Positions 1 through 52,519 of a DNA stretch of 64,000 nt are shown here, one piece after another. Position 1 is the stretch's first letter, and every line of letters starts with the position of its first letter. A program made the translations under genes and the position numbers. Source of the DNA: Macrostomum lignano (taxonomy: Eukaryota); the NCBI GenBank assembly GCA_002269645.1, contig NIVC01001693.1, positions 1-64,000 of the forward strand, in the 5' to 3' direction. The notes under the pieces were generated by a model. It saw only the letters and a list, made by a program, of their open reading frames with translations, had not been told where the DNA came from and made no database searches.

Positions 1-1966
1 GACAATGGCGTGCACTTTCGATGGAACGTCCAGGACGAAAGCGGCGTGCTGATTAGGGGAGAGCGGGGAGTTCCTCAGCTCAACGAGGAGAAGGCGCCAG
101 AGCACCAGCCGTTCCATCAGTTTGAGGAAGAAGGACGTCAGACTGATAGGGCGGTAAGCTTTGGCGGAGTGATAGTCTCCCTTTCCTGGCTTGGGTATGA
201 AGACTACCGTAGCCTCTTGCCAGGCTTTTGGCACATACCGAGGGTAATGCTGGCCTTGAAGAGGTTGCAGAGGAGGCCGAGAAACCTATCATTTTTAACT
301 GCCTCATGAAGGAAGGCAGGATAAATGTTGTCAGGACCCGGGGACTTGAAAGGAGAGAAGGATTTTGCGGCGCGAGCCGTCCTCTCTCTAGTAATGATGG
401 TCGAAGCCAGGATCTGTCCGCCCGGAGAGTGGTCCGGTGGGCCTTGCTGCGGTGCGGCACGTGGGAAAGAGCTGGTGAGCATAATGTCCAGCGATTCCCC
501 AGGGTTCTCAGCGAGCCGGCCGTCCGGTCTTTTAATAACTGAGAGCTTTGACATTTTGTCGAGGGTGAGAGCCTTAACTACGCGCGAAGTAGGGCGGGTG
601 CCTTCTAACTCCGCGCAGTATTGGCGCCATTTGTCGGACTTGCCTTTCCTGGTTTCACGCTTAAAGTCGCGGATCGCTTCTTGATAGGCGGCCAGGTCAG
701 CTGGGTCCTTGCTCTTGCGAGCTTTCCGTTGGAGGCACTTTGCCTTGCGCCGGAGGGATCGAGCGCCGGGTGCCACCAGGGGGCGGATTTTTTGCCTTTG
801 TAGGCTTTAAGAGGACAGGAAGCCTCATGGGCTGTCAGGACGGTCTTGCTGAGCAAGTCTGCAAGGTCATCCACTTCCTGACAGGTGGTTGGAGCGACGG
901 TAGTCAGCTGATCTGTCTGGCATTTCAGGGTTTCCGTGAAAGCCGTCCAGTCAGTGTTCCGGACGTTCCTTTTCCACAGAATTTGAGGCTTGGGGCAAGA
1001 GGATTGCAAACGAAAACGAAAGAAGCGATGGTCAGACAGAAACTCCTCTTCGTCCCACACCTCCCAGTCCTTGACTAAAGGAGCCAAGCCATGGGAGACG
1101 AGGGTAACGTCGAGGGCCTCCGTCCATCGCCAGTTGTCAAAGTGGGGGTTCCACCAATGTTGCAAAACTCAGTGTTGGTGGTGCAGATGTAAGCAAGGAG
1201 TTCCTCGCCTCTGCTATTGGAAGAATTACTGCCCCAGTGGGTGTGGTGAGCGTTGATGTCGCCCGCCACCAGCAGCTCGAACCTACGGTTAGAGCAGTAG
1301 TCCACGAGGGAGGTGAGGTTGGGTGGAACCGCGGGCCATCGCCAGGGATATAAATCGAGGCGATTATGACCGTGCGGTTGGTGATAATGTGGATGGACTG
1401 AATGACACAGAGATCTCTGTCAGAGAGGTCCGGTCTGTGCCAAGCTTTGAGATGGCTAGACACGAACATGGCTGCTCTGGGGTTTTGAGGGTCCTGAAAA
1501 CAGTCAAAACCAGCAGGAATATTCGGAATCTTACCTTTCTTTGTCCAGGGCTCCTGGAGTAGGATGATGCCCGGTTTCGCAAAGTTTGCCACCCGCATCA
1601 GGTTGGTCGAGGCCGCGATGCAGTGGTGCAGGTTTAGCTGCAGGATGTCCACTCCGGGGATTCCACGAGTGGTCCGCGCAGCTTCCTGCCGGCTCAAGGC
1701 GAGTTGTGCAGGAGAGCTGCCTCTTCTGCCTCGCCGATAGCTCCAGGTTCCAGCTCCATGGGCTCCTCCCGGATGGATTCCATGGTCGAGGGCGATGTCG
1801 CTACCTGGGCGGCATTCTCGCTCTCGGCCCGGTTTTCCGGGGGGGGGGCGCAGTGGTGACACTGGGCTGGGGGTGGCTGCGGTTGGGGGCCGCTGCTCGC
1901 CCAGTACCTCCGGGATACGCCGGTGAGGAGGACTGCGCTGCAGGCGAGACCGACGGGTCCCCCTGA
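1..1966 (-). mobile_element. Non-LTR retrotransposon ORF2 (AP endonuclease + N-terminal RT), LOA/Lian- or R1-like; frameshifted, runs off the left edge
   Basis: Minus-strand pieces in different frames: APE motifs DILQLNLHHC, IILLQEPW, IASIYIP, LVAGDINAHH..WGS, FLSDHRF; linker APWW, WRQYC; pre-RT KSPGPDNI; and a manual translation of 1-235, YVPKAWQEATVVFIPKPGKGDYHSAKAYRPISLTSFFLKLMERLV (RT domain 1). Several frameshifts. Confidence 0.92.
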
Positions 1967-5217: not shown

Positions 5218-6288
5218 TCACATGTTGCGGCAAGCCTTGCTTTTTTTCTTATTTTTTTCGATTTCCAGCTTCTTGAGCCGCTCTTCCAATTCTTCATTTC
5301 TCTGTCTCATGCTTTCTTGTTGTTGCTTCATCTCATCATTTTCTTGCTTCCTTCTTTCCGCCTCCTGCTTTAGAGTTTCCTGTTCCTCCTTCATTTTTTC
5401 GTTTTCCAGAGCCATCTTCTCATTCTTGATTCGATTGTCCTCGTTCTCTTGCTTCAGGCGTTCCTGCTCCTTGAAGATCCTCAGGGCAATCTCCATGTTC
5501 TCGGCCATTTTCTCGGTGACGGTAAACAGACCAGTGATGGAATCTCCCAAGCTGTTCAGATCCCGCAGAGCATCATCAAGCTTTCCTCTTTGGTCGTCAA
5601 ACTCACCAGCCAGTTTTTCCAGTTTTTTCGCCTTATCGTAGGTGTAGGCTCCCGCGCCAGCCGCGGCTGCACCCATTGCAGCAGCTCCAACCGCAGCGAC
5701 GCCTCCTGTAGCAAAGGTGAGAAAGCCAAGAGCGGCAGCGCCTAGAACTCCTGCAGCGCCATATCCGCGAGCCTTCGTGGTCGAGGCTTTGGACCTGCTT
5801 TCCGCGGCTGCGACTCTGCACCGCTCTGCGAGGCGAGACCCTACGTCAACAGCACGATTCAGTTTCTCTCTGAACTCTTTGTAGCACTTGCCACAGTTGC
5901 CGGCACTCTCCAGCATTAACTGCAGCAGCTGAATGCAATTTTGAACTTCAGCGCGACTAATTTCCTTTCGTTCAAAGGTCTCGTAAATGTAATTTTCAAA
6001 GGACTGCCACTTTTCCCTCAGCTCAAGACATCTTGACCTCAGATCTTCTCCAGAAGCATTTGTGTCTCGCATTGCGTCTCGAAAATCACTGACCTCGGCT
6101 TGGGCGATGCTGGCGGCTTCCTTGGTCAATTCCGTCAGAATATCGTGCGATTGTTGTGTGACAGCTGATACAGTATCATAGATGCTACTTGCAGTGCTTG
6201 CTATTTTGCTAGCAGCTTCAGTCGCTGTCGTTAGGTTGCTCATCATGTTCATAACGTTCGTGGCTGCGCCTGTCTTTTTTTGCGACAT
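5218..6288 (-). CDS. Cluster protein P1: 356-aa helical protein with Gly/Ala hydrophobic hairpin, coiled-coil tail and polybasic+CaaX end (ApoL/ClyA-HBL-like architecture)
   Basis: Intronless ORF. First ATG at 6288 in AAAACAATG context (the track's TTG at 6321 is less likely). Hairpin GYGAAGVLGAAALGFLTFATGGVAAVGAAAMGAAAAGAGAY; E/K/Q heptad tail; C-terminus KKKSKACRNM. Clear paralogy to 19234-20286. Confidence 0.88.
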   Translation of the reverse strand: MSQKKTGAATNVMNMMSNLTTATEAASKIASTASSIYDTVSAVTQQSHDILTELTKEAASIAQAEVSDFRDAMRDTNASGEDLRSRCLELREKWQSFENYIYETFERKEISRAEVQNCIQLLQLMLESAGNCGKCYKEFREKLNRAVDVGSRLAERCRVAAAESRSKASTTKARGYGAAGVLGAAALGFLTFATGGVAAVGAAAMGAAAAGAGAYTYDKAKKLEKLAGEFDDQRGKLDDALRDLNSLGDSITGLFTVTEKMAENMEIALRIFKEQERLKQENEDNRIKNEKMALENEKMKEEQETLKQEAERRKQENDEMKQQQESMRQRNEELEERLKKLEIEKNKKKSKACRNM

Positions 6289-6395
6289 TGTTTTGATCCT
6301 GTTTGTTATTCTTTGTCTCAAAAAATACTACAAGTCTGCTTTTAGCGTAGGATCTCGAGCTAATTTTGATCGTATGTAGAACTCCCGTTCTTTAT

Positions 6396-11555: not shown

Positions 11556-11738
11556 TTCTTTGTATGCTTCTTAAATCACAGAAGTTGAAAAAATCCAGAA
11601 ATTATGGCACTCGGGTGCTAAAATTAAGGTCGTACATGATCGGTTTTTAACTAGCAAAGAGCTTCTTAAAAGCTAGTAATTTACCTAGTTTCAAACTTAA
11701 ACTTAACAAAAAAATGAATGCATGTCCATTTCAGAACA

Positions 11739-12755
11739 ATGGCCATACCTCATGCGTCCGATCTGATTCATGATGCTCAAGCGTTCAAACTGAACAATGA
11801 AATTATTAGTATCAACAGAACGTTTTGGTTGGTATTGAAACCCTACGATCAGTTACTAAAAAGGCTGACGAAATTGATGTCGGAAGCGTAGAGTTGCTGG
11901 AAGATTTTCGGCACAGTTTGCTTTCTTTGGGTACACAATTTGATGCCACTAAAGATGCTGCTTCAAATCTCGAAAATAGTGGACAAATCATGAATAAAAC
12001 TCTACGGGAAATTGTGGCGACCCATGAAAAGACATAAAAAAGTTAAGGACTGTCTTGACAAGCTGCATGAAGTGCTGGATTCAGCAAACGAATATAAAAA
12101 GGAACACAAAAGTTTTGGCACCTGTCTTGAAGAAGTCATCCAGAACGCTGAAAATTTGCGAAATAACCTGGAAGATGAACACAAGAAATCCCAATTAGAG
12201 GTTTCCAGCCGAAAAACTAAAGGATATGGCGCAACGGACGGATTGGCAATCGCTGCCAGTGTGTCCGTGAATCTTGGAATCGCTGGATTTTTCACTTTGA
12301 GTGCTACATGGGCTCCTGCAGCTGCCTTGGCTTCTGGAGTAGCAGCTGGCACAGGACTTGGAATCGGATCTGTTACCAAGGGGATCAAAACTACCCTCGA
12401 CGTTCAGGAGTTGGACAGGAAGGCCGACGGACTGCTTAAAATCATCGATAGTTTGTCGGCTAACCTGCGTCAGCTCGATAGGGTATATGAGTCATCAACG
12501 GAGAAAATCCAGTTTTCCGACGACATGATTAACGCCATTTCTGATATGATAGACATGTACCAGGAACGGCACCGGGTTCTGGAGAAGGAGGAAAGATTAG
12601 AAGCTCAATACCAAGCTTTCAAGGTTCAGTCGTCAAACATGCGCAACCTAGAGGAAAAGTTCCGAGAATCAGAAGCTCGTCAGAATGAACTGCTCCGAAG
12701 CCATCAAGAGCTCCAAGCTCAGCTGTCGGCCAGGTGGAGATGTATCGTAATGTAA
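11739..12755 (+). pseudogene. Cluster protein P2 (~338 aa if repaired), two frameshifts; ends in canonical CaaX CIVM
   Basis: ATG at 11739 after tttcag acceptor (MAIPHASDL...). Frame changes at ~11823-11826 (TTTT) and ~12027-12041 (A runs). The joined N-terminus NNEIISINRTFLVGIETLRSVTKKADEI aligns with P3 RKRILDLNKNICKNIETVRNVAAQAKKI. Hydrophobic hairpin, coiled-coil tail, ...ARWRCIVM. Could be an intact gene with sequencing indels. Confidence 0.75.
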
Positions 12756-19233: not shown

Positions 19234-20286
19234 ATGGAGAAATTTGGCAAAAACCTCGTCACATCTGCTGGAATAGCCGGAAAGATGGTCGAAGCAGCCA
19301 ATTTACTGGTTAATACAGTTGTAGAGGTGACTAGCAGGGCACAAGAAGTGCTGATGAAGCTTAGCAAAGAGGCCGCAAGTATCGAAAGTGCACTAGCAGC
19401 CGAATATGAAGACGTTCTAAAAACGACAAAATCATCTGCCAACAAATTCCAGCGACTTTGCAACGAACTTCAGAGCAAGTGGAACCGGTTCGAGTTCAAC
19501 AGGGATAGGAACCCTATTGTGGCGAGGCAAGTACAGTCAAATCAATACGAAGAGATCATTCGACAGCTACAAGAGATGCTAGAAAAAGCAGCGGAAATTT
19601 ACGAGGAATACAACTTTTTTAAGGAGCACATGAAAGAAGCGGTGAGACTAAACACAGATCTTAGCGAGCGATCCAGAGTAGCGGCGGAGGAAGCGAGTTC
19701 GAGTGCTAGAAATGCTCGAGCTGTCGGCTACACGGCAACAGGACTCTTAGTAGTGGCCGGCTTGATTTTAACTGTCGCCACTGGAGGAGTCCTGGGCGGT
19801 GTGGGAGCGGCGGCACTGGGTACCGCAGCCGCTGGTACAGGCGCCTACACGAGCAGCCATGCAGGCAGTCTGGACAAGCTGGCCAATGAGTTTGCAGACC
19901 TACAGAACGACTTGAAGACCTCTTTGCGAGACCTCGACGGTCTAGGAGACCAGATCGAAAAAGTGATGGAAGCTACTGAAGCTGTAGCAAGAAAAACTGA
20001 AGAGGAAAAAGATTCTGTTGAGCAGCATCGACAAAATTTTCAAAACAATCCTCAAGTTGTCTTGCACCAACCGAATTCTTTCGAAGAACAATTGTGGCGA
20101 AGAGAAGATTTCGAACAACGCAACAACCCACCTGATATTAGGCAAATGCGGCACAATGCTGACCTAAGAGTTAAGGAAGCGGAATTAGCTCTTGAAAGAC
20201 ATCGTCGGGAACATGCGGAAATGCGTAATAGAGAGCTCGAATCGGGGCGCTGTTGCTTCTTCTGCTGTCCTTCCAGACGCTCTTAA
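19234..20286 (+). CDS. Cluster protein P4: 350-aa helical protein with Gly/Ala hydrophobic hairpin, coiled-coil tail and terminal Cys cluster
   Basis: Intronless ORF. KLSKEAASI and LCNELQSKWNRF align with P1 ELTKEAASI and RCLELREKWQSF. Hairpin VGYTATGLLVVAGLILTVATGGVLGGVGAAALGTAAAGTGAY; ends SGRCCFFCCPSRRS. Confidence 0.88.
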   Translation: MEKFGKNLVTSAGIAGKMVEAANLLVNTVVEVTSRAQEVLMKLSKEAASIESALAAEYEDVLKTTKSSANKFQRLCNELQSKWNRFEFNRDRNPIVARQVQSNQYEEIIRQLQEMLEKAAEIYEEYNFFKEHMKEAVRLNTDLSERSRVAAEEASSSARNARAVGYTATGLLVVAGLILTVATGGVLGGVGAAALGTAAAGTGAYTSSHAGSLDKLANEFADLQNDLKTSLRDLDGLGDQIEKVMEATEAVARKTEEEKDSVEQHRQNFQNNPQVVLHQPNSFEEQLWRREDFEQRNNPPDIRQMRHNADLRVKEAELALERHRREHAEMRNRELESGRCCFFCCPSRRS

Positions 20287-23995: not shown

Positions 23996-24606
23996 GACGC
24001 AAACCTGATTGTAATTAAAAAACAATGAACTCAAAAGTACTTTAGCAATTGCTCACTTATTATTCTGACAGATGCACCGGAAATGCAACAGGAAGTGTTA
24101 ATTGATTAAAATTTCGCTGTGCTTTTTGCGCTCCAAATATTCTAATTTAATATTCGAGACGAAATCATCGCGGGATCGAACCAGAGCAGCAGGTCTATGT
24201 ACAAATCAGATAGCTTAAGTTTTGAGTACAGTTTAGCCAGTTGCAATCAATGTACAATGGGAAACGCGAAAAGAGTCACCATACGAGGAGCTCCCGTATT
24301 TACAATTTTCTAACCTATATAATAGAATTCATAAATCATAAATGAACAAACTAAAGTTTACGAACCGATTATAAGATTAAAACAATAATAATATACGACA
24401 GGGGGGGGGGGGGAAGGCACCCGGCAGCAGTTGAGAGGCCGGCCACTATGAAAAGAATCAATGAAATGAAAAAATAGAGTGTAATAAAAATAAATTCAGT
24501 AATAAATTTCTTATCTAATAATATGTATGATGACAGGCTAAGCGTTAATAAATTTGGCTGCTAATAAAACACTGCCAGCGGGTTATTTAAAAGTACATCG
24601 GGTAAT

Positions 24607-26295
24607 TCAGGCCAGGGGGGACTGCAGCACTCGTAGCGGAGTTGTCTGGATGCTGTGCACCGCCCTCAGAGGGCCGCTAGATGCCGAGCAATGAGTTGAA
24701 CTGTCCGCTGAGGCTGCCCGATGCAGATGATGCTGGTGATGATGCTGCAGCAGCTGGGGTGTCCGCAGGGCGCTGGCTGATGGCAGGGTGCTCAGCGGAG
24801 GCAGCGGCGGCGGCGGAGGAGGCAGCTGCGGTTGCTTCCTCGGCGGCGCCAGCGGCGGCAAGCGATCGACAGCCGGGGCGACGGCGCTGCCTCCGCGTCG
24901 GACAGCCGTCGGGCCGGAGGAAGCCGCGGAGGAGCCGCCGGCGCTCAGGCGGTGCAGCAGACGTCGGACGGCCGGCGGGCTGGGCGACGCTCGCGGAGGT
25001 CGCTGCGGTGTCGGCGGCTGCGGGTGCAGCTGGCGGCTCCGACCGGGACTGCGGCTGCGCGACCGGCTGGCCAGCCGACTGACCGCCCGGCCGACGGCTT
25101 TCAAAGCGCCACCGAGGGCGCCGCTGCTTCGTCGACGACGCCGACGATTCTCTTCCTGTTGAATGCTGTCGCTGGAATCTTCTCCGTTGTCGAGCTGGTG
25201 GTGCTGGCGGGAGATGTGGCGCGCCTGCTGCTGCAGCTGCAGGAGGTGCTGGTGCTGGTGCAGGCCCAGCTCGCTGGGGAACTCCACCAGCAGGGCGACT
25301 CCGCTGTTCAGGCGGGCCATCTCGCGCGGACAGACTGCGGCTGATGGGGCCCGGGCGAGGAGGAGGCTGGGCCCTAGGGATGTGGCCAAATTTGAGGCGT
25401 CCATGCGGTTTCGCTGGCTATTGCGGCTCACCTGAATTTTATAGAAAAAAATGGACTTTTTAAATCAGAATTCTAGTGTAATTTGCGGATGATACTACTG
25501 AACAGGCGACTTAGTAGAATGATGAGTCAATAAAACTAAACAGACAATTTCTTGTTTAATAAAAAACTCGAAAAAGAGCCTCACCTCGCCAAGAAAGCAG
25601 CAGAGGAACTGCAGGGCGGTCAGCTGGTCAGCTGGCAGCAGCAGGCCGCACAGTCGCAGGATTCGAACCCGGCGCTCCGGGGACGCCTGAGTGGCAGCTT
25701 CGGCCAAGGCGTGGGCCATCCTGGCCGGCACCAGCGGCTCCGGCAGCTCGCGCAGCCAGGCCTTCAAAGTTGAGCAGACATCCTGCGGCGGCGTGCCGTC
25801 TCGGATACCGCAGCCGTGTTCCAGACGCTGTCGAAGGTCGCGCAGCCGCAGTCGGGAGCCTTCAACGCGGAACAGGCCCTCGGTGTCCAGAAGGCCGCCA
25901 CAGCGCAGGTAGGCGCAGCAGTCGGCCAGCAGGGCGGGCACCCGGCCGAAGCCGGGCACCTCGCGGCTTGGCTGGTCCGCCAACGCCCGGCCAAAACAGG
26001 CCGTGGTCGTCGGCGCTGCTGCAGTTGGCGTCGAAGTCAGCAACGAACTCGCCGCTGAAGCGGACAACGCGGCAGCAGCTGGAGGAGGCCTCTGCTGATG
26101 AAGCGATGGCTGATTTGGCAGCCGGATGCCAAGCAGCCGGAGCTCCTGCTCGGCCAGAGCGGCCGCCACCGCCGACACCGGAGGCTGCTGCAGACGGCAG
26201 GTGCACTCTGCCGAACTTTGGCTTCGCTTCTTGTCGCAGGGCGAGCGGCTGTTGACGCTGTAGGTCTTCGCTGAGCACAGAATCGCTGCAGACAT
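24607..26295 (-). CDS. RhoGAP-domain protein (ARHGAP11-like), 2 exons 26295-25585 and 25431-24607, 511 aa
   Basis: FGRAL...VPALLADCCAYL...EGLFRVEGS (arginine finger)...DVCSTLKAWLRELPEPLVP...FLGE|VSRNSQRNRMDASNLATSLGPSLL. Phase-0 GT-AG intron 25584-25432. Low-complexity tail. Confidence 0.93.
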
Positions 26296-27208
26296 GATCG
26301 TACTTGCGGTGGCCGCCGCTGCAGCTGGTCAAGTGCTCAAAAAACTGAGTTATCTGTCGATCCAATCAGTCTGTCTGTCTTCTTATGACTGGAGCTCTGT
26401 GTGTGTTTAAAACGCTTGTCTATCAATCTGAAGGTATACCGATGCCGGCAGTAAAATATAGATAGATGGGCTTCAGGCAGACACCTGGGTGGGGGGTTTT
26501 ACCAAATAGGCCTGCGTTGGATGGGGTGTTGGGGCCCGTGCCGGTGTGCCGGCCCAGCCAATCAGAAGGCTCGGAGAGTGTGACAAATATTTTTAGACAG
26601 GCCGGGGGTTCAGTGGAGGGACCAGGAGAGAGGGGGCCGCGCAACCCCTCCCCCCTACAGCAAGGTCCTCGCTTGCTCACCGCCCCGGCTCAATGCAGCT
26701 TGGGATATTTTTTCGCGAAATGGGCTCCCTATTTTTCCAACAACCGCTGGAGTTCCGATTCCCCTTTCCCACCACCCCCACCCCCCCCCGGGTGGCGCAT
26801 GCCTTGAGTAAACAGTGCAGACATGAACCCCAGGCCAGTTCGTTTCCAAGATATAGCTTTAGCAATATAGGCCTCTACTGGAGTTCGGTAAATACGATTT
26901 ATTATGAAGTGCCTTATTGCCGGCCTATCATTGAGCTCGTTTGCAATTGAGCCTGTCTACTCTATTTGATATATGCGAACTAAATTTGAGTTTTATGACC
27001 CAGCTCTGCCCGCGTGCGGAACCAAAGACTGAATGAACTGTGAGCAGATCGTTCAGTTTACATTAGACACAACAGATGCGCTGTGCTGTCTATTACGAAA
27101 ATATATCGGGAACTTTGGTTGGTGGATGTGATTAATTTTTTTAGTAAACTTGGTTTCATTTTAAAGATGAATAATTTCTCGGTAGTTTAGTTGAAACTTC
27201 AAAACCCC

Positions 27209-29800: not shown

Positions 29801-31659
29801 TTTGTGGATGATTTTGTCGCTGTTTTGGCTGATCTTTTATGTCACACATTGATAATTTCTTTTATTCTGCGTTCCCTTCACAAAAATGTCCAAACTGCAG
29901 TGAAAATAATGCGTTTCCGGTACACGCAGGGCATCTGACAGCTGTCAAGCACAGTTGCAAATCAGAGCAGTGTGTCCCACTGCAATTGAATAACCGGAAG
30001 CTTCCGCGCAGCGGCCACGCGTTCTTCGAAAAAAACACTCCATCAACAATTTTAAAAGATTCTGCAATGTATGTAAAACGCTACATCAAAAATAATAACG
30101 TACATTGCATACACAGCAAAAAATATAAGCATAACTTATTAGCTCCAAATTGGTCGCGTGTCGCCTTTGGATCGGAAGCTGGATTCTATAAATATCTCTT
30201 GGGAAAATTATCCCACCCGCAGAGGCAGGTGTGAGCCTCCGTTCCCCACATCCCCCACACACGCCGTTGGCCCCGAGCCTAGCAACTAAAACTAGAAAAT
30301 AACTATTATAACTAGCCACGCTACCATCGAAGAATAATTGAAATGCTTTTCTAAATTCCTTTCTCAATCGGGGTTAGCCAGAGCCACTTTGATTATTGGT
30401 CATCTTTCAATTAGTTGCACCAGCCCAAGACCGTTGAAACACGAAACTGTTTAGGTTTGCCAGCTGGGTGAGTTAAACTTTATGCAATAATGCCAAGGAC
30501 TCCAAGCATTCCCAGCATCGCATGACTGCGCACTGAAGATGGGGACTCGGAGGTCTCAAGCGTCGAGCACACGCAGCCACCGGGTGTCGCGCTCCCAGAC
30601 CTCCCCCCCCCCGAGAGGCAAACTGGAGAGCTCCTCTCCCGGTTACAATCCGATGACAATTTTTTGCAATATGTCGAATCTCCCCTACATGTATCTCCCC
30701 TTGGATATGCTGAACCAAGGAGTTTTACAGCTAGAATCTGGAGTTGAAAAGCTCTGACTGTAGGTCACAAGAGATTAGGAGCTCAGGAGCCAGTCGAATG
30801 GGCAGAATTGCTTTGACAATGATTGTGGGACCACGTCGGGAGACTTGACATTCGATAGAACTGACTGTTTAGCACAAAGTGAAACAAATACTATGTTGAT
30901 TAAATCGGTCAAGGTCATTGTGGTATCTATTTTACCAATCCGAGTTTTGGCTCTGGGAGTCCTTGGCTCAACTCCAAGGGAAGCTCAAAAAGTCCCAATC
31001 TTTTGAGCCAGCCAGCTCTTATCCTCGGCTCTGGGAGACCATCTCCACCAATGTGCCACCCGCTGAGATTGCGAACCTCCCTCCCTCCCTCCCTCATTCC
31101 CTATTAATACCGCTTCCGGGAGCTTCAATCCCTGCACGTGGTGGCTCGGGAAAAATATGGCACGGAATAAACACTACGAATAATTCCACTTCAAAGCCCC
31201 TTTTGTTGAGAAAAAATTCAGAACTATAGCTCTCGTATATAGATAGCCATCATTGCAATCTGCCATCCCCCTCTCCCCCCACGAGCTCGAATATTCCTTT
31301 GATATCGTGGAGGTGGCAGAGGCGCTCGCACGTGGGGAATATAGTTAGGGGATATTAATACCGGTATAGTGGTGGTATTTACTAATAATATATACCTTTA
31401 TGTCTAGGCGGCAGCCTATATTGTCGGCTTCTTATCTGCAAGCGCGGACCAAATTAAATAAAGCGGTAGATAAATAATAGACAGGCTGCAAAATTCGGTT
31501 AAATTTAGTAATGTTAACTTTAAATAGTGGACTGAAGCAGGCAGTAAGCTCAACTTTTGGTGAACACTCTCCATCTCTCAAGTCCATGGGCATTAAAACC
31601 CTATAATGTTTTATAAAAGCTTTGCCTTGACATAATGCACATGCGCTACCATTGGCGCC

Positions 31660-32300
31660 ACAAAAAGACTCAGGATCGGCGCCACAAATAGCCTCAGAAT
31701 TGGCGCCACAAATAGCCTCAATATTGGCGCCACAAATAGCCTCAAGATTGGCACCACAAATAGCCTCAGGATCGGCGCCATAAATAGCCTCAGGATCGGC
31801 GCCACAAATAGCCTCAGGATCGGCGCCACAAATAGCCTCAGGATCGGCGCCACAAATAGCCTCAATATTGGCGCCACAAATAGCCTCAAGATTGGCGCCA
31901 CAAATAGCCTCAGGATCGGCGCCACAAATAGCCTCAGGATCGGCGCCACAAATAGCCTCAGGATCGGCGCCACAAATAGCCTCAAGATTGGTGCCACAAA
32001 CAGCCTCAGGATCGGCGCCACAAATAGCCTCAAGATTGGCGCCACAGATAGCCTTAGAATTAGTGCCACAAATAGACTCAGGATTGGCGCGACAAAAAGA
32101 CTCAGGATTGGCGCCATAACCATAAATAGACTCAGGATTGGCGCGACAAAAAAACTCAGGATCGGCGCCACAAATAGCCTCAGAATTGGCGCCACAAATA
32201 GCCTCAAGATTGGCGCCACAAATAGCCTCAAGATTGGCGCTGCAACCTCAAATAGCCTCAGAACTGGCGCTACGACCACAAAAAGCCTCAGGATTGGCGG
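31660..32300. repeat. 24-bp minisatellite ggcgccacaaatagcctcaggatc x~26
   Basis: Tandem copies; gives the spurious (VAPILRLF)n ORF. Confidence 0.97.
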
Positions 32301-32789
32301 CATAAATAGCGCCGCAAAAACGCCAGAAAATAGCAAAGGATTAAATAGATTGAAGTATCCCAACAGAAAACTGAGCAGCAGATATATTAGCTACTGATAT
32401 AAATCTGAAAATTGTTGCAGAGGCTTGCAATGCAGAGTGAAAGAATTAAGAAACACAGCCACGTCTCTCACCCCAACCCCAATGCGCTAACACGATTGCA
32501 TGAAAAAATAAGGAAAGATCATAATTATCAGGGAAATTCTTCTATCCTGCACAGTCCACCTCATTTTTCGCACCTTTTTTATCTTTTCAGCTCTTGAGCC
32601 CTCTTGACATTTTCTTATTGAAAAATATGTAAAGCTTTCTATAGTAAATTTGACTGAAGTTTATATATGCGAAGCTTATGTTTCTAAATTCTATGTATAC
32701 GAATTTGATTATTTTTTTCTGAGGCAATACATGTATTACCCTTTGAACTATAAAAAAAGGCGTCAACTTGAAGAACCATCTTGAAATGG

Positions 32790-33570: not shown

Positions 33571-34229
33571 GAAATCTCCTTGAGACTTCTAAGCAAAGTC
33601 ACCCATATATTCAATAAATATTCTCCATAATAGAAAATCACTCAGAGTAAAACTTCCGGACACTTAAAACCATAACGAACTCGACTTACACTGCGCCTAG
33701 CAACTATTTGATGTCGCTGCTTGACTTCCTGCATCGAATCTGGTGGCCCCCTTAATGACGCAATCCGCTCTTATGATCACTTTGACTCTGACTTCTTCAC
33801 TTTAACTGTTAACCTCCCCCCAATACACTTCTCTAAGTTGACAGTAGGGCCTAATTACACCCCTATCTACACACCTTGACAACACCAGTTTCACACTGCT
33901 TGGTTTCTGTTCTGAGTATACAGAGGCAAAGCCGTGTAAGTGAGAACATGTGTGCGTGTTCTTCGCACCTGAATGGGGGAGCATGACTACCACCATGGCA
34001 ACTGCACCACTATCGCAGAAGATTATAATTCTCATCTTGCAGTTGGGATTGTTTATTTATTAGCCATCTTGAAGGTGACGGTCCATCGGTTGGGTGTTAG
34101 ATTTATTCACTGTGTGTTGCGCAACTTCTTAAACCCGATAAATTCTATTGGGGAATTTCGAAATACAACTTGCACAGTTTTATATGGTTTCATTCAGGCT
34201 CAAAATTCAATTCAATTGATTCACTCACT

Positions 34230-34860
34230 CTCACATCTCTCTACCTCTCTTTCACATCTCTCTCTCTCTCACATCTCTCTCCCTCTCTTTCACATCTCTC
34301 TCCCTCTCTTTCACATCTCTCTCCCTCTCTTTCACAGCTCTCTACCTCTCTTTCACATCTCTCTACCTCTCTTTCACATCTCTCTACCTCTCTTTCACAT
34401 CTCTCTACCTCTCTTTCACATCTCTCTCACTCTCTTTCACATCTCTCTATCTCTCTTTCACATCTCTCTACCTCTCTTTCACATCTCTCTCTCACATCTC
34501 CCTCCCTCTCTTTCACATCTCTCTTCCTCTCTTTCACATCTCTCTACCCCTCTCTTTCACATCTCTCTACCTCTCTTTCACATCTCTCTCACTCTCTTTC
34601 ACATCTCTCTATCTCTCTTTCACATCTCTCTACCTCTCTTTCACATCTCTCTCTCACATCTCCCTCCCTCTCTTTCACATCTCTCTTCCTCTCTTTCACA
34701 CGTCTCTACCCCTCTTTCACATGTCACTCAATCTCTATTTCACATCTTTCTCACTCTCGTCTCTCTTACTCTTTCACGTCTCTCTACCTCTCTTTCACAT
34801 CTCTTACTCTCTTTCGCATTTCTAGCTCTCTTTCTCATCTCTCTTTCTCTATCTTTCACA
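34230..34860. repeat. CT-rich 21-bp minisatellite ctctctttcacatctctctac
   Basis: Tandem copies; explains (LPLFHIS)n and (SLSHLST)n ORFs. Confidence 0.95.
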
Positions 34861-35599
34861 GCTCATTATAGAAAATTCAGTACGACTAATTTAAAGGCAT
34901 TGCCAACCTGCTCCTCAAACTGATGAAGTCAAAGTCAGACTCAAAGCTTCATAATAGTAGGTTAAAAGCAATAGTCACAGCTGCAACTGACAGGCAGTGC
35001 TGTGGTGGATGAAGAGCCCTCATTGGGAGAAATACAATGACATTTCTGATGAGGCATTGCATAAATAGATGATGCCGTCTTGATAAGGCGGACAATTTTG
35101 AGCACAGTCAGAGCCCGTGTGACAGACAGGAGGTCCCTCCTCCGCAGGCTCGTGGCATTTTTCGTCTCGCTTCCCCCATTTATAATAATAATAATAACTA
35201 TATCTGTAACCCCTGCCCCACCAACCCATCCCACCGAATTCCGATAGTCGAAATTCCCTCTCACAGAGAGGCTGACCACTTCAACTGTTCATTCCGACGC
35301 CGCGGCGGGGCTGCTCAATGGCGCCTCAGGGGGTTGGGGTCCCAACTGAGCACTGCTGGATGAGGCAGATGGCTTCAAAATCGTTTCAATCCTCATTTTT
35401 CAAGAGGGTAGGTGTCCCCCCTCGCGTCTGTCTATCTAAAATCTATTCCCAATGGCCCAATTTTCCACGAAATGAGCCCTCAATGAGGGAATTCTTTCTG
35501 GGCCACGCGCTTGTCTATATTAGAAGATATTGATTGCGTCACAGTCTGCGAATTTTAGCAGAGCGCGGGCAGGCTAGGGGCTTAGGCTTCTAAATTTCC

Positions 35600-35965: not shown

Positions 35966-36614
35966 TCGAACTCAAGCAGATTTAGGAGGATATCAATTTT
36001 CAAAGAAATCCCCTATTATGGGGGCACTGGGATTCATCCCAACAACAATAGGTATCGGGTATGCATGAGAACTAAACCTTTGGTCACGTGTCTGTGAACC
36101 GGCTCAATTATTTTTGCTTGACTAAGCCAAACTAAACTGACTCTGAAAAAGGGGGAAATTCGTGACTAAAAAGATTTTTCCCATCGCAAAGAGAAGCTTC
36201 CTCTCTGCCTTTGGTTTCGTGCGCGAGCTTGAATGGAGTGGCTCGATTTTATCAATGTGGGGGATTTATCGTAATTATACCAGGTGGGATCGCCTGGTTG
36301 CATTTCTAGGAATTAATTACACGTAGGTGCAGCCTTGCGTGGGGGTTAAACAGCTGAATGCCCTGCCTTTGACTGGGATTTAGTCAGTCAGTACTCTATA
36401 TAAACAGATATACCAGACTGCGTATTGATAATTAATATGCAGAGGAGAACGGCAGGTGACCTCTGCCATTCTGCCCTAGGCAGGCAGTAATAAAATAAAT
36501 AATTCTGTAGTGCAATGACAGCTCGAAAAATTTTATCAACAAATTTGGTAGCATAAACAATTTTTAGCTATTTTGGAAGCTATAACTATTTTTGTACTTT
36601 GGATAGAGCAGGCT

Positions 36615-37040
36615 ACTTGGAAGCTATACTTGGAAGCTATACTTGGAAGCTATACTTGGAAGCTATACTTGGAAGCTATACTTGGAAGCTATGCTTGGAA
36701 GCTATGCTTGGAAGCTATACTTGGAAGCTATACTTGGAAGCTATGCTTGGAAGCTATGCTTGGAAGCTATACTTGGAAGCTATACTTGGAAGCTATGCTT
36801 GGAAGCTATACTTGGAAGCTATACTTGGAAGCTATACTTGGAAGCTATACTTGGAAGCTATGCTTGGAAGCTATACTTGGAAGCTATACTTGGAAGCTAT
36901 ACTTGGAAGCTATGCTTGGAAGCTATACTTGGAAGCTATACTTGGAAGCTATACTTGGAAGCTATACTTGGAAGCTAATTGGAAGCTATACTTGGAAGCT
37001 ATGCTTGGAAGCTATACTTGGAAGCTATACTTGGAAGCTC
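36615..37040. repeat. 13-bp minisatellite ggaagctat(a/g)ctt x~32
   Basis: Tandem copies. Confidence 0.97.
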
Positions 37041-37979
37041 ATCTTTTCTCATCTCTCCCCTCTCGAGAGGAGAGGGCTTCTTTCCTTCCACATTCCTTTT
37101 TGGGCTTTAGGAAAGCAACTTGCGAGTGTACTATAGAAAGGGTAAAAAATCTATCATACTCGTAAACCCCATTGTTCATCTGGAACAACAATCATGAACT
37201 ACAAAAGCAACAACAACAACAACATCCAGATATCAAAATTAAGCGCCTTATTCAAATCAAATTTCAAAGAAACTGCATGCAGACTCCTTCCTCCCCTACT
37301 CCAGACACTTCCTCTATAGAGCTTCGCCCACAAACCGAACGCATGCGGGCGGCAAAGGCGTATAATAAGGAAGTATTATAACAGGGGATTCTTCCCACAC
37401 TCTTCGCCCCCAAAGACCAGTTATTGTAGGTCTCATTGGCACACGTGACCACCTCTTTTGTTCCATTATTATTGCAATGACGAGGCAGAGTGCCACGGGT
37501 CAGAGGGCCTGCGTGCTCCCCAGCCTGGGGGCAGCAGATCCTGGAATTGCAACAGTGATGACGAAACGAAATGAGTCTGAGGTCTGAGGGTCCAACGGTC
37601 CATCATTACTGAGCTTCCTTGTTCCGTCTGAAGAAGCTTCTACCGGTGTTGGAAGATGTGGAGCATGGAACGGCGATGGAGACTCTTGTCCCTTTGTTGT
37701 TAAACGAGTGGTCTTAATGTATTAGATTCCAATCATCCTTATGATTATCAAAAGGAAAATAAACAGTCATAAAATTGCATTTTGAATGTTAAAAATTAAT
37801 CTAATTTTATGCATCATTGATTTGCTACTACTAGTAGTAGCAGAAAAAGCATTGTAAGTGAAATTTTAGAAAATCAAGCAGCAGAAAAATGTGTTTGAAG
37901 TCTACAAAAATCTCCTTGACGACTCTATTGAGTCTCATCTGAGCTGAATATATCGAAACTTCCAACCTCAGTCTACCAC

Positions 37980-38940: not shown

Positions 38941-41084
38941 AATCTAAATCTAAGTCAGCTTTTGTAATTCAACTCGGATGACATTCAGTAAAACAAAGCA
39001 GTAAAAAAACCATTTTCAGGCAGTTTAAAAGTACAAGCAGATCGCACATCAGCTGATTGCTCTCAGCTGTTACCCGATGGCAATAATTTGAGTGCAGCCA
39101 ATTCGGCCCCTAAAAACTGGAAGGTCAGTGCCGAGTGGACCCTGACACCGGACCCTTTTACCTGCCTTTGAAGCCGGTGCAGCCTGTTGGCTTCTTGATT
39201 GCCAAGCAAAACTTCACTCGCCTCTCTCAGCTGATAAGCCAGCCTATTGGAAAGGCTGGTGCAGAAGCAGAAGACTCTCCTATGGAAACCGGTTCGAACT
39301 TGGAGCTGGCCCCGATTGCACCTGATAATCACCCCCCCCGCCCACCGCTTGTGTCACCCCTCTGCGGGGGTTTGAAGGCAACTCAGGCTGCCACTGCAGG
39401 GCCTGACAGTGCCTGACACATGAGAGGCAGGCGAGTTATCGCTGGCGGGTCGCCCCCTGCCTTATCGGCAACCCGCTGCGGCGCTGTGCCCCCCCGCCTC
39501 ACCCTACCCAGCTGATAGCGCCGACAGCATTTAAACAGCCGCCGTTGGGAGCCCCCCGACAGCCGCTGCACTCTCCGTTTGTAATCTGCTGAAATTGAAT
39601 TCTGAATCTGAATCGGCTGTCGAGTTCGCGGACTGCAGAGAGGTCGGCCAAATCTGCAGCGTGTCGAATACCGAACCCTCTAGCTCCCAGCTGGTGTACT
39701 CTTGGCGGTTCGGCATCAGCTGTACAGGATGCGTTTTCTCTCGCCAAATATGAGGCTGAAATATTCTGTCTCAGAGGCCATTTCGGAGCTGTCATAGAGA
39801 GAGAAAGCCATTCTGGCAGCTGGTGTTGAGTCGCTTTGTTCGGCAAGAAGGTTTCAAATCCAAGTTTAACACAATCTTAAGCTTCTGTTTGTCAGCTGTG
39901 TACATTTCTTCCATCGCTATTAAGACACTGAGAGAATGGCTTTATTAAATGATTTGGTCATTAACTCAGCAATGTGATTGGAAGCAGTCTGCGCAGCTGT
40001 CACTCGCTGAGCTTTAAGCATCGTTGCCCATTTTTTTACATTTTTGATATTTTCTCATCTCATTTATTGATTGTATTTTCTTTTAAATTCAAATTCGCGC
40101 CAACAAAGACGCAAGTTTTAAATAAAATTATTTAAATTTTATTTGCTTGTATTGAATTTTTTTAAACAATAAAATAAACGACAGAATGATCGCTATTTTT
40201 TCTAAGAAAGCATTTCAATTTTTTAAACTTATTTTTCTCGCACTGTCTTTCAATTAAAGTTGAAGTCGATAATGAAGAATTCGGCCTTAGAGAACCCACA
40301 CTCTGGCCATAGACTGCAGAAAGCACAAGGATACGAAAGTACTCTAAAGAGTTGGCTGTGTTGAACGTCTGAGACTAATAAATTTATTTACTAGTGAGCT
40401 ACATGTACATTGAAACGAGGACTTAACGAATTCCAGTGCAATTAGCGTTCAAAGATTAAAAGTTCGGAAGCTTCGAGCCATCAAATTAATCCTTGAGGCT
40501 AAACTCCAGAAATGGCTAAAACGAGGTGATTTTTTGTTTATTAACTTTTTACATTTTCCCTTCCAACTTCAGACTTGCGATTGAATTGCATAGCTCAGTT
40601 ACTGCGAGTCTGTCGGTGGAGTTGAGATAAGAAAAAATTAGTTTAGAACAGAGCAAGTCCCCTACTTACTTGATCTCCACCTGCTGAGCGCCAATTATGA
40701 AAGCAACTTGCAAATTTTAGTTGGACCTGAGCGCCACTGATAGCGGGCAGCTCAAGCATTTGGAGTTCGAGCGAGCGAATGCCAACCTTCTTGCTACTTT
40801 TCGCGTCCAGATTAGGGGAAAAATTTTCCAACAAACGAATTGCTTGTTCTGCCGCTGCGTTTGCAAATTGTTTTGATAAGAAATTCCACTCAACTTATAC
40901 TAGTTGAAATAATGCAAAGCTTTCAAAATTTCCTGAACTGCTGCCTCGGCTACGGGTGAAGGTGAATGCGTTGCACAGATAGAAGTCATGCAGTCACGTG
41001 ACATTACAGTGTATATGCATTAACCGTTACTAATCCTTAATTAATCAATTCTAGTGGCACTCCCGGCATCATATCTGATCCTTC

Positions 41085-41880
41085 ATAGATTCTGCTGACG
41101 CTTTCTCGCTCCGTCACCAATCCTTCATAGATTCTACTGACGCTTTCTCGCTCCGTCACCGATCCTTCATAGATTCTACTGACGCTTTCTCGCTCCGTCA
41201 CCGATCCTTCATAGATTCTACTGACGCTTTCTCGCTCCGTCACCAATCCTTCATAGATTCTAGTGACGCTTTCTCGCTCCGTCACCAATCCTTCATAGAT
41301 TCTAGTGACGCTTTCTCGCTCCGTCACCAATCCTTCATAGATTCTGCTGACGCTTTCTCGCTCCGTCACCAATCCTTCATAGATTCTAGTGACGCTTTCT
41401 CGCTCCGTCACCAACCCTTCATAGATTCTACTGACGCTTTCTCGCTCCGTCACCAACCCTTCATAGATTCTACTGACGCTTTCTCGCTCCGTCACCAATC
41501 CTTCATAGATTCTAGTGACGCTTTCTCGCTCCGTCACCAACCCTTCATAGATTCTACTGACGCTTTCTCGCTCCGTCACCAATCCTTCATAGATTCTACT
41601 GACGCTTTCTCGCTCCGTCACCAATCCTTCATAGATTCTACTGACGCTTTCTCGCTCCGTCACCAACCCTTCATAGATTCTACTGACGCTTTCTCGCTCC
41701 GTCACCAACCCTTCATAGATTCTAGTGACGCTTTCTCACTCCGTCACCAATCCTTCATAGATTCTAGTGACGCTTTCTGGCTCCGTCACCAATCCTTCAT
41801 AGATTCTACTGACGCTTTTTCGCTCCTTCACCAATCCTTCATAGATTCTACTGACGCTTTCTCGCTCTGTCACCAATCCT
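41085..41880. repeat. 42-bp minisatellite x~19
   Basis: ctgacgctttctcgctccgtcaccaatccttcatagattcta; explains the (VTERESVSRIYEGL)n ORF. Confidence 0.97.
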
Positions 41881-43776: not shown

Positions 43777-48770
<4,994 letters not shown>

Positions 48771-51278: not shown

Positions 51279-51529
51279 CTGTGGCAGTTGTAAGGAAGCG
51301 AATAGCGATTCTTCGGTTAGGTTAGCAATGCGCAGGTTGGGACCACCATCAGCTTGGATAAGACTGTACGGCCGCTTCTGACCGACTCAACGGTTTGTCT
51401 TGTGGGACTCTTTATTAATAAAACCCATTTCACTTACCATCTCTCCTCATTTCTCTGTCTTCCTCTTAACTATTATTATCCTCACCTTTAATATGCATTT
51501 CAATACCCCTCTTCCTTTCGTCCTCAATC

Positions 51530-51975
51530 TCTCTCTCGCCCTCAGTCTCCCTCTCACCCCAGTCTCCCTCACACCCTCAGTCTCTCTCTCGCCCTCAAGT
51601 CTCCCTCTCGCCCTCAGTTTCCCTCTCGCCCTCAGTTTCCCTCCCGCTCACACTCAGTCTCCCCCCCCCGCTCACACTCAGTCTCCCTCCCGCTCACACT
51701 CAGTCTCCCTCCCGCTCACACTCAGTCTCCCTCCCGCTCACACTCAGTCTCCCTCCCGCTCACACTCAGTCTCCCTCCCGCTCACACTCAGTCTCCCTCC
51801 CGCTCACACTCAGTCTCCCTCCCGCTCACACTCAGTCTCCCTCCCGCTCACACTCAGTCTCCCTCCCGCTCACACTCAGTCTCCCTCCCGCTCACACTCA
51901 GTCTCCCTCCCGCTCACACTCAGTCTCCCTCCCGCTCACACTCAGTCTCCCTCCCGCTCACACTCAGTCTCCCTC
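51530..51975. repeat. 22-bp minisatellite cagtctccctcccgctcacact x~19
   Basis: Tandem copies. Confidence 0.96.
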
Positions 51976-52519
51976 GGACCATTGAACTCTCCATATCGCT
52001 CTAATAAGTATACTTACTTTCTGCTTGTGTCTAGCGCGAATTTTCACGCCAAAATTTGCGTGCAAATATTTTATCCGACTGTCGCAAGGAAGTCCTACGA
52101 GATTTTGTATTAAATTGATTGCAAAGCAACAGTACATATATTACTATTAATTACATAATAGTACATATTTCACTGTCTCAAAAAACGAGCGCGAGTTCTC
52201 CGTGTCTTTATGACTCTACTGTCAGTAGGAGATTGGAGATTTTTCTAGAAATAAAAAAACAACTTGCATGACATCATTAGCTTACAGAGCTCCTCAGTTT
52301 GATGCGCATTTTAGCGCGAAAATTTGAAAATAAGTAAACTATTTTTGATGTGTAGGGCATCTCTAAAAATACGTTGAATAGGAGATTAATTAGGGAATTC
52401 TTGGATTTCGGACTGGCTCTTGAAAACGTCGCAAATTGCAGTTGGATCTGCCAGCCAGCTCGTCCAGCAATCCCACCTTCACGGTCGGAGACTTTTCAGA
52501 AAAAAAATAAATAATAAAG

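Follow-up and report, generated by a model that had tools for sequence, protein, structure and literature searches.

How might a cytosolic protein that is built like a bacterial pore-forming toxin come to be placed on one particular membrane of the cell that makes it? The question is raised by a group of genes in the flatworm Macrostomum lignano, carried on contig NIVC01001693.1 of GenBank assembly GCA_002269645.1, of which positions 1 to 64,000 of the forward strand, a window of 64,000 nucleotides (nt), were analysed. Translation of the open reading frames (ORFs) gives P1 (5218-6288, minus strand), a single exon whose first ATG opens a frame of 356 amino acids (the ORF as called mechanically begins at a TTG, position 6321); P3 (15239-16297, plus strand; 352 amino acids), which has no C-terminal Cys; and P4 (19234-20286, plus strand; 350 amino acids). 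A fourth gene, P2, with a main ORF at 12012-12755 on the plus strand, is damaged. The four are mutually paralogous, with E-values of 1e-39 for P1/P4, 2e-6 for P1/P2 and 2e-5 for P3/P2.

P1, P3 and P4, together with the damaged P2, would be tandem single-exon paralogs. The Macrostomum family to which they belong would consist of cytosolic proteins resembling ClyA, Hbl and ApoL, each made up of an N-terminal helical bundle, a Gly/Ala-rich hydrophobic hairpin able to insert in a bilayer, and a coiled-coil helix of considerable length. In the clade formed by P1, P4 and two relatives, P0003 and P0004, that helix would end in a Cys-based lipidation signal. Following synthesis in the cytosol, the C-terminus would be prenylated and/or palmitoylated, and the anchor, together with a second signal, would keep the protein attached to one particular membrane, on its cytosolic side, from where the hairpin could engage that membrane. 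That these are cytosolic ClyA/ApoL-like paralogs with lipid-anchored C-termini and a membrane-engaging hairpin is the reading towards which we lean, without great assurance.

The C-terminal tails and their relatives

A preliminary description of this DNA had drawn attention to the four C-termini, and translation confirms both the residues and the coordinates that it reported. P1 ends KNKKKSKACRNM. Its tail, EKNKKKSKACRNM followed by TGA (5218-5260, minus strand), consists of a polybasic run and then a non-canonical CXXX box, CRNM, in which a1 is Arg, a2 is Asn and X is Met. The last 19 residues include seven Lys and one Arg, and the stretch LKKLEIEKNKKKSKA, with its seven Lys and the Arg inside the box, has a net charge of about +6. 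The signal of P1 would be this polybasic run combined with CXXM, and the Lys/Arg run appears suited to act as a polybasic second signal. P2 ends ARWRCIVM, its CaaX box CIVM (TGT ATC GTA ATG; 12741-12752, plus strand) being followed by TAA at 12753-12755; with Met at X, CIVM is, judged by its residues, canonical for farnesyltransferase (FTase). P3 ends KKIARQLLGTE. P4 ends GRCCFFCCPSRRS and contains the Cys cluster CCFFCC (TGT TGC TTC TTC TGC TGT; 20251-20268, plus strand), a candidate S-palmitoylation site. Within RCCFFCCPSRRS, four of the five Cys of the whole protein fall inside six residues, an arrangement that fits the loose description of palmitoylated C-terminal Cys clusters, which is weak evidence. 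In AlphaFold2 (AF2) models the P4 tail is non-helical and of low confidence (predicted local distance difference test, pLDDT, ~51), and the P1 tail is helical to its last residue.

Cys is scarce outside these terminal motifs: there is one other in the 350 residues of P4, and there are two in P2 and five in P1. A Cys at position -4 and then a stop codon is found in P1, P2 and the relative P0003, and not in P3 or P4. At a Cys background of about 2% (1.9%, calculated from 71 family relatives), its occurrence in two of the four paralogs has a probability of ~0.002. An aliphatic or hydrophobic residue at a2 is absent in P1, which has Asn there, and present in P2 (Val), P0003 (Val) and P0004 (Ile).

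The relatives were identified by searching a library of 1.8 billion proteins with a P1-P4 profile, which returned 71, annotated M. lignano hypothetical proteins included; the annotated M. lignano members are all single-exon and of similar length. In a neighbour-joining tree the pairs P1/P4 and P0003/P0004 form one clade, and a terminal Cys motif is present in all four. The sequence of P0003, taken from run SRR28338164, terminates in KNQRQSCVCSVL, and its 1.4-kb contig shows the stop after CSVL. P0004, for which an exact-sequence look-up gave no record, belongs to a fused gene model of 1171 amino acids, in which FKRKQSCVCAIL is found where the family domain stops. The two proteins are only 52.5% identical overall, yet both retain QSCVC[SA][VI]L, P0003 ending CVCSVL and P0004 carrying CVCAIL. 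Over their final 12 residues P1, P0003 and P0004 align in register, with their Cys positionally equivalent. At the aligned Cys position P4 has Met (...HAEMRNR) and continues for 17 more residues into CCFFCC.

In P0003 and P0004 the signal would be a CaaX box with Leu at X and an adjacent palmitoylatable Cys (CVC[SA][VI]L). CSVL and CAIL predict substrates of geranylgeranyltransferase-I, and the second Cys, two residues upstream, is likely a palmitoylation site. The signal of P4 would be the palmitoylation-type cluster on its extension, with Met left at the equivalent position. From this short alignment we infer, as the simplest reading, that the P1/P4/P0003/P0004 clade had an ancestral CaaX tail and that P4 traded its prenyl site for a palmitoylation-type cluster. 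Such an exchange would speak for selection to retain an anchor of some kind. It is possible, if doubtful, that interchangeable lipid anchors serve to pre-position ClyA/ApoL-like effectors of pore-forming type on the cytosolic face of different Macrostomum membranes, the anchor being swapped and not lost; the anchor types would then be, just as tentatively, geranylgeranyl plus palmitoyl, polybasic plus farnesyl, and a palmitoyl cluster. The earlier proposal that each paralog is addressed to a different membrane would be pure conjecture.

The P1 tail had been likened to the signal of K-Ras4B. The polybasic run and the Met at X sustain that likeness, whereas the Leu-ending boxes of its relatives predict geranylgeranylation over farnesylation. 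CRNM had also been called non-canonical, correctly, on account of the Arg and Asn at a1 and a2. In a yeast FTase screen of CXXX sequences, the main restrictions were Asp, Glu, Lys or Arg at a2 and Lys, Pro or Arg at X, and boxes of the CKQQ and CKQS type were farnesylated (PMC10320760). As none of these restrictive residues occupies a2 or X in CRNM, CIVM, CSVL or CAIL, farnesylation of CRNM is compatible with the yeast rules, and the box may be of the farnesylated-but-not-cleaved type. The codons of the P1 tail include two A7 runs, and the possibility was considered that its frame is an artefact of these. Alignment of the translated tail with those of P0003, P0004 and P4 makes this unlikely, as does the polishing of the assembly with Illumina data (PMC5730564).

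A different role for these residues is conceivable, in which the terminal Cys is functional but unlipidated and either links the stalks into oligomers through disulfides or bound metal or acts as a redox switch. Coiled-coil tails would juxtapose terminal Cys residues, the CCxxCC pattern of P4 resembles metal-binding or disulfide clusters, and the relatives P0014 and P0022 have one Cys apiece, at -5 and -7, set within CVP rather than in a CaaX box. However, no signal peptide is seen in the proteins by hydropathy, which would place them in the cytosol, a reducing compartment in which disulfides are uncommon. Moreover, the -4 spacing recurs four times, in three of them with aliphatic a1/a2 residues and Leu or Met at X (CSVL, CAIL, CIVM); this combination of spacing and aliphatics is the signature of prenyltransferase substrates, and is unneeded for disulfides. 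An unlipidated role is, in our judgement, quite improbable.

Across the wider family the lipidation-type ending is restricted. The preliminary description had asked whether relatives keep a Cys at -4: P0003 and P0004 do so, in register with P1, but only one of the 71 wider relatives does. All annotated members lack a terminal Cys, as do three more Macrostomum paralogs that were discovered in flanking sequence. No relatives of the CaaX clade were found in a metagenome scan with the clade alignment, and a word-index protein search with P1, a 13-sequence alignment and an alignment of the N-terminal domain gave no matches, having also missed P0003, itself a member of the query. The P3 clade shares a terminal motif of its own, R-x-L-(L)-G-[TH]-[EDV], seen in P3 (RQLLGTE), its second copy P3' (RLLGTD), P0007 (RRQGLH), P0009 (RRLGHD) and P0010 (KLLGHV), and the Cys-less end of P3 may hide a different conserved C-terminal signal. 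CIVM in P2 occupies the position of LGTE in P3 and looks like a separate gain. These comparisons partly support the lipidation idea: within one clade of the family, terminal Cys motifs recur non-randomly, have been conserved and take the form of prenylation or palmitoylation signals.

A predicted toxin-like fold

AF2 models of P1 (pLDDT 82.8) and of P4 (from a 71-sequence alignment; pLDDT 80.7) consist of four very long helices; the Gly/Ala-rich hairpin, modelled with low confidence, lies between the third and the fourth. The family layout is a helical bundle, a Gly/Ala-rich hydrophobic hairpin of 40-45 residues and a coiled-coil tail, and in a hydropathy scan of P1-P4 the central hairpin, there 35-46 residues long, is the sole strongly uncharged stretch. 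In P1 the hairpin GYGAAGVLGAAALGFLTFATGGVAAVGAAAMGAAAAGAGAYTY (5638-5766, minus strand; amino acids 175-217; low AF2 confidence) is the longest stretch without charged or amide residues, reaches a KD19 of up to 1.75 and aligns to the head hairpin of Hbl-L1. The C-terminal helix extends well past the family-aligned part of the protein, helix 212-366 of P1 holding some 80 extra coiled-coil residues.

ClyA-family toxins dominate the top Foldseek matches, with ClyA first for both models. P4 against the ClyA monomer gave TM-scores of 0.50/0.60 and a probability of 1.0, with E between 0.016 and 0.08. A profile of 13 family members matched Hbl-L1 (7nmq) with an E-value of 9e-8, over a region spanning the compositionally biased hairpin and its flanks, and P4 scored 29.3 bits, above the cut-off of 26.5, against Pfam SctB2 (PF05802), which represents the SseD-type translocon of type III secretion. 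In the search of the whole library, the P1-P4 profile also matched P0043, an ApoL protein (Pfam ApoL E 1.3e-98), with an E-value of 3.3e-5. Direct membership of the ApoL family was considered and rejected: Pfam ApoL (PF05461) has no match to P1-P4 at E <= 1, and in a comparison with one ApoL sequence by hhalign the probability was 56%, over 42 columns. Because the Foldseek E-values exceed 0.01 throughout, Pfam ApoL is unmatched and the hhalign result is weak, P1-P4 are labelled ClyA/Hbl/ApoL-like on sequence and model grounds, and not members of those families.

The preliminary picture of cytosolic-type helical proteins with a long C-terminal helix is upheld by hydropathy, the AF2 models, Foldseek and the profile matches. 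So is its statement that P1-P4 have no N-terminal signal peptide, in that the hydropathy scan, the only method applied here, found no signal-peptide-like hydrophobic N-terminus in any of the four.

A distant relative of the family, P0044 (389 amino acids), has an AIG1/GIMAP-type GTPase (Pfam E 1e-35) fused to the family hairpin domain, a fusion that hints at an immune context.

The closest matches in structure and sequence are secreted bacterial alpha-pore-forming toxins (ClyA, Hbl-L1, MakA, AhlB and SmhB), and the family evolves fast (see below). Both features would suit toxins or gland products that are released by unconventional export, as for bacterial ClyA, and that act on foreign membranes, in which case the tails would be irrelevant to intracellular targeting. 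Yet no signal peptide is apparent from hydropathy, modification of a CaaX box would still take place in the cytosol, and both the intracellular ApoL relatives and the AIG1/GIMAP GTPase fusion point to intracellular roles. We regard release from the cell as very unlikely.

Intact, copied and decaying genes

The main ORF of P2 encodes the hairpin and the coiled coil, ends RWRCIVM and scores 77.4 bits against the family hidden Markov model (HMM). A remnant of the N-terminal domain lies at 11825-12037 (plus strand), in a frame other than that of the main ORF; the two align co-linearly, and addition of the remnant raises the score to 83.1 bits. P2 has undergone at least one frameshift, homopolymer runs adjoin (11700-12040), and a possible start Met (MAIPH..., 11739) is back in the main-ORF frame. 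The frames overlap by just 26 nt, which leaves no room for an intron, and joining of the two by splicing was therefore rejected. A TATAAA sequence is found 94-197 nt upstream of each of P1, P3 and P4 (115 nt upstream of the ATG in the case of P1), against a background of 0.45 per kb; no TATA box was found upstream of P2. In view of the split frame, the absence of a TATA box upstream and the polishing of the assembly with Pilon (PMC5730564), P2 is probably a pseudogene or truncated gene, the other option being a residual assembly error. It had been proposed that prenylation of P1 is less certain than that of P2; this holds for the boxes, CRNM being non-canonical, but not for the genes, as P2 is frameshifted and a probable pseudogene.

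A second genomic copy of the locus lies on contig NIVC01002257.1, and the stretch read there carries the genes P4' and P3'. P4 and P4' are 98.9% identical at the DNA level, with 12 nt differences and a ratio of nonsynonymous to synonymous substitution rates (dN/dS) of 0.29, and CCFFCC is unchanged in P4'. P3 and P3' (L002:19764-20579) differ at 108 of 813 nt and by one in-frame codon indel, and their proteins have diverged by 23%, but no stop codon has appeared; the chance that the ORF would stay open under random substitution is 0.8%. Their dN/dS, 0.91 overall, is lower in the coiled-coil tail (0.69) than in the bundle and hairpin (about 0.9-1.0). As the ORF has stayed open beyond chance, this ratio suggests fast protein evolution and not decay; such evolution would, by analogy, be of the sort seen in immune and reproductive genes.

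GenBank gene calls were seen for 11956-32669, and P2-P4 are not among them. Annotation of the M. lignano genome discarded transcripts that overlap repeats (PMC5730564), so this absence is weak evidence. Elsewhere in M. lignano, two more intact family ORFs (L005:3697-4674 and L007:4988-5878) lie uncalled beside annotated members. The GenBank gene calls thus miss at least four family genes, counting P2-P4 and these two ORFs, and the family appears to be systematically under-annotated in this species.

These data bear on the simplest alternative to lipid anchoring, namely that the terminal Cys is incidental: the genome is neopolyploid and rich in repeats, and these ORFs would be duplicates in it that are in decay or not expressed. 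P2-P4 are unannotated, P2 is frameshifted, and a P4-like sequence between P2 and P3 (13598-13749, plus strand; 55-75% identity by tblastn to amino acids 108-169 of P4) is the remnant of a decayed family member. The dN/dS of P3/P3' is close to one, and the low-complexity codons of CCFFCC could come from slippage. Against this, the P3/P3' ORFs are open beyond chance, P4/P4' shows a low dN/dS, and the CaaX tail of P0003 and P0004 has been kept at 52% identity and in register with P1, in a family where Cys at -4 is otherwise rare; the missing annotation, as explained, says little. An incidental origin of the terminal Cys is judged unlikely.

Several points nevertheless weigh against lipid anchoring in a ClyA/ApoL-like family. 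P1-P4 are known here as genes from sequence alone, and an exact-sequence look-up of the four ORFs in protein collections gave no record, in addition to the gap in the GenBank calls. The only canonical FTase box, CIVM, sits on the frameshifted P2, which also lacks the upstream TATA box of its paralogs, and CRNM, the box of the intact P1, is non-canonical, with an Asn at a2 that is poor by classical FTase rules. The tail of P0004 lies inside a fused model and its stop codon is unverified. Since P4 and P4' differ at only 12 nt, they are too similar for the conservation of their tail to be informative, and a dN/dS of ~0.9 for P3/P3' is also expected under relaxed constraint. To these may be added the weakness of the fold matches, both in Foldseek and in the ApoL comparison by hhalign.

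The surroundings of P1-P4 are those of an ordinary flatworm genome. An annotated RhoGAP-domain gene (511 amino acids) occupies 24600-26400 on the minus strand, and an ORF with an SH2 domain lies at 43777-44331, also on the minus strand. Many long tandem and simple repeats between 31600 and 52100 give rise to spurious repetitive ORFs, such as those at 31611-32363, 33973-34923, 36573-37165, 41037-41708, 46814-47815 and 51400-52113. At 204-1862 (minus strand), a GC-rich segment (57% GC) has three overlapping ORFs that resemble a decayed retroelement and gave no Pfam hits. A fifth ORF, P5 (21956-22669, minus strand), was considered as a further paralog and rejected, with a family HMM score of ~3 bits and no significant BLAST match. 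Annotated in M. lignano as a hypothetical protein, P5 contains both helical and hydrophobic segments; its counterpart in the second genomic copy (L002:10001-10579) is shortened to 192 amino acids.

Significance and comparison with known systems

GTPases, lamins, SNAREs and guanylate-binding proteins (GBPs) are familiar bearers of prenyl and palmitoyl anchors. What P1-P4 and their relatives add, as far as their sequences tell, is the presence of signals of these known types on an uncharacterised ClyA/ApoL-like flatworm family. No report of lipid anchors on ApoL-like or ClyA-like membrane-inserting proteins was found. The preliminary description had known of no prenylated protein of this kind, and nothing found since contradicts it: we know of no report of a prenylated ApoL, and literature searches for prenylated ApoL, flatworm ApoL and an ApoL-ClyA link gave nothing relevant.

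If the proposed mechanism is true, an animal cell can tether a protein of pore-forming potential, by its distal end, to one selected membrane. The recent paralogs would then provide a compact natural experiment in anchor switching. They would also represent a lipid-anchored, cell-autonomous system of membrane attack or remodelling, in which one polypeptide combines the roles of mammalian prenylated GBPs and ApoL3. M. lignano is tractable to transgenesis, so that questions about the tails are directly approachable in the animal.

The signals themselves have close parallels among small GTPases. The Lys/Arg run of P1, followed by CXXM, is like the end of K-Ras4B, and the Cys two residues before the C-aliphatic-aliphatic-Leu box of P0003 and P0004 is like the upstream palmitoyl-Cys of H-Ras, N-Ras and RhoB; CIVM of P2 is comparable to their CaaX boxes. 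Unlike in Ras and Rho proteins, the P1 box has Arg and Asn where aliphatics are expected, and what the signals are attached to is no GTPase but a helical protein that would insert into membranes. In lipid-anchored SNAREs, such as Ykt6 (CCAIM) and SNAP-25 and syntaxin-11/19 (Cys clusters), prenylated or palmitoylated Cys residues replace a transmembrane anchor. P1, P2 and P4 resemble these in being coiled-coil proteins with a candidate lipidated Cys at or near the C-terminus; however, no SNARE motif was detected in P1-P4, the Pfam syntaxin and V-SNARE models scoring far below threshold, and the central hairpin is not a SNARE feature.

GBP1, GBP2 and GBP5, immune-type proteins of the cytosol, carry a CaaX box at the tip of a long helical stalk (PMC2998424). 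Stalk and box are comparable to those of the flatworm proteins, but the GTPase domain and any sequence or fold kinship are absent in P1-P4, and the likeness, though useful in thinking about function, is one of analogy only.

With the ApoLs, P1-P4 share an arrangement of helical domains around a hydrophobic hairpin, and most ApoLs are intracellular and made without a signal peptide. The broadest likeness is to the ClyA superfamily (ClyA/HlyE, Hbl-L1, NheB, MakA and AhlB/SmhB) and to SseD/SctB, which share with P1-P4 a bundle of very long helices and a Gly/Ala-rich hairpin in mid-chain. In contrast to these bacterial proteins, P1-P4 are encoded by single-exon genes of a eukaryote, a flatworm, and are of cytosolic type, and a pore-forming activity would be expected of them only by resemblance. 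To the shared layout they add 80-130 residues of coiled coil with Cys motifs of lipidation type at the end, an extension without counterpart in the bacterial toxins.

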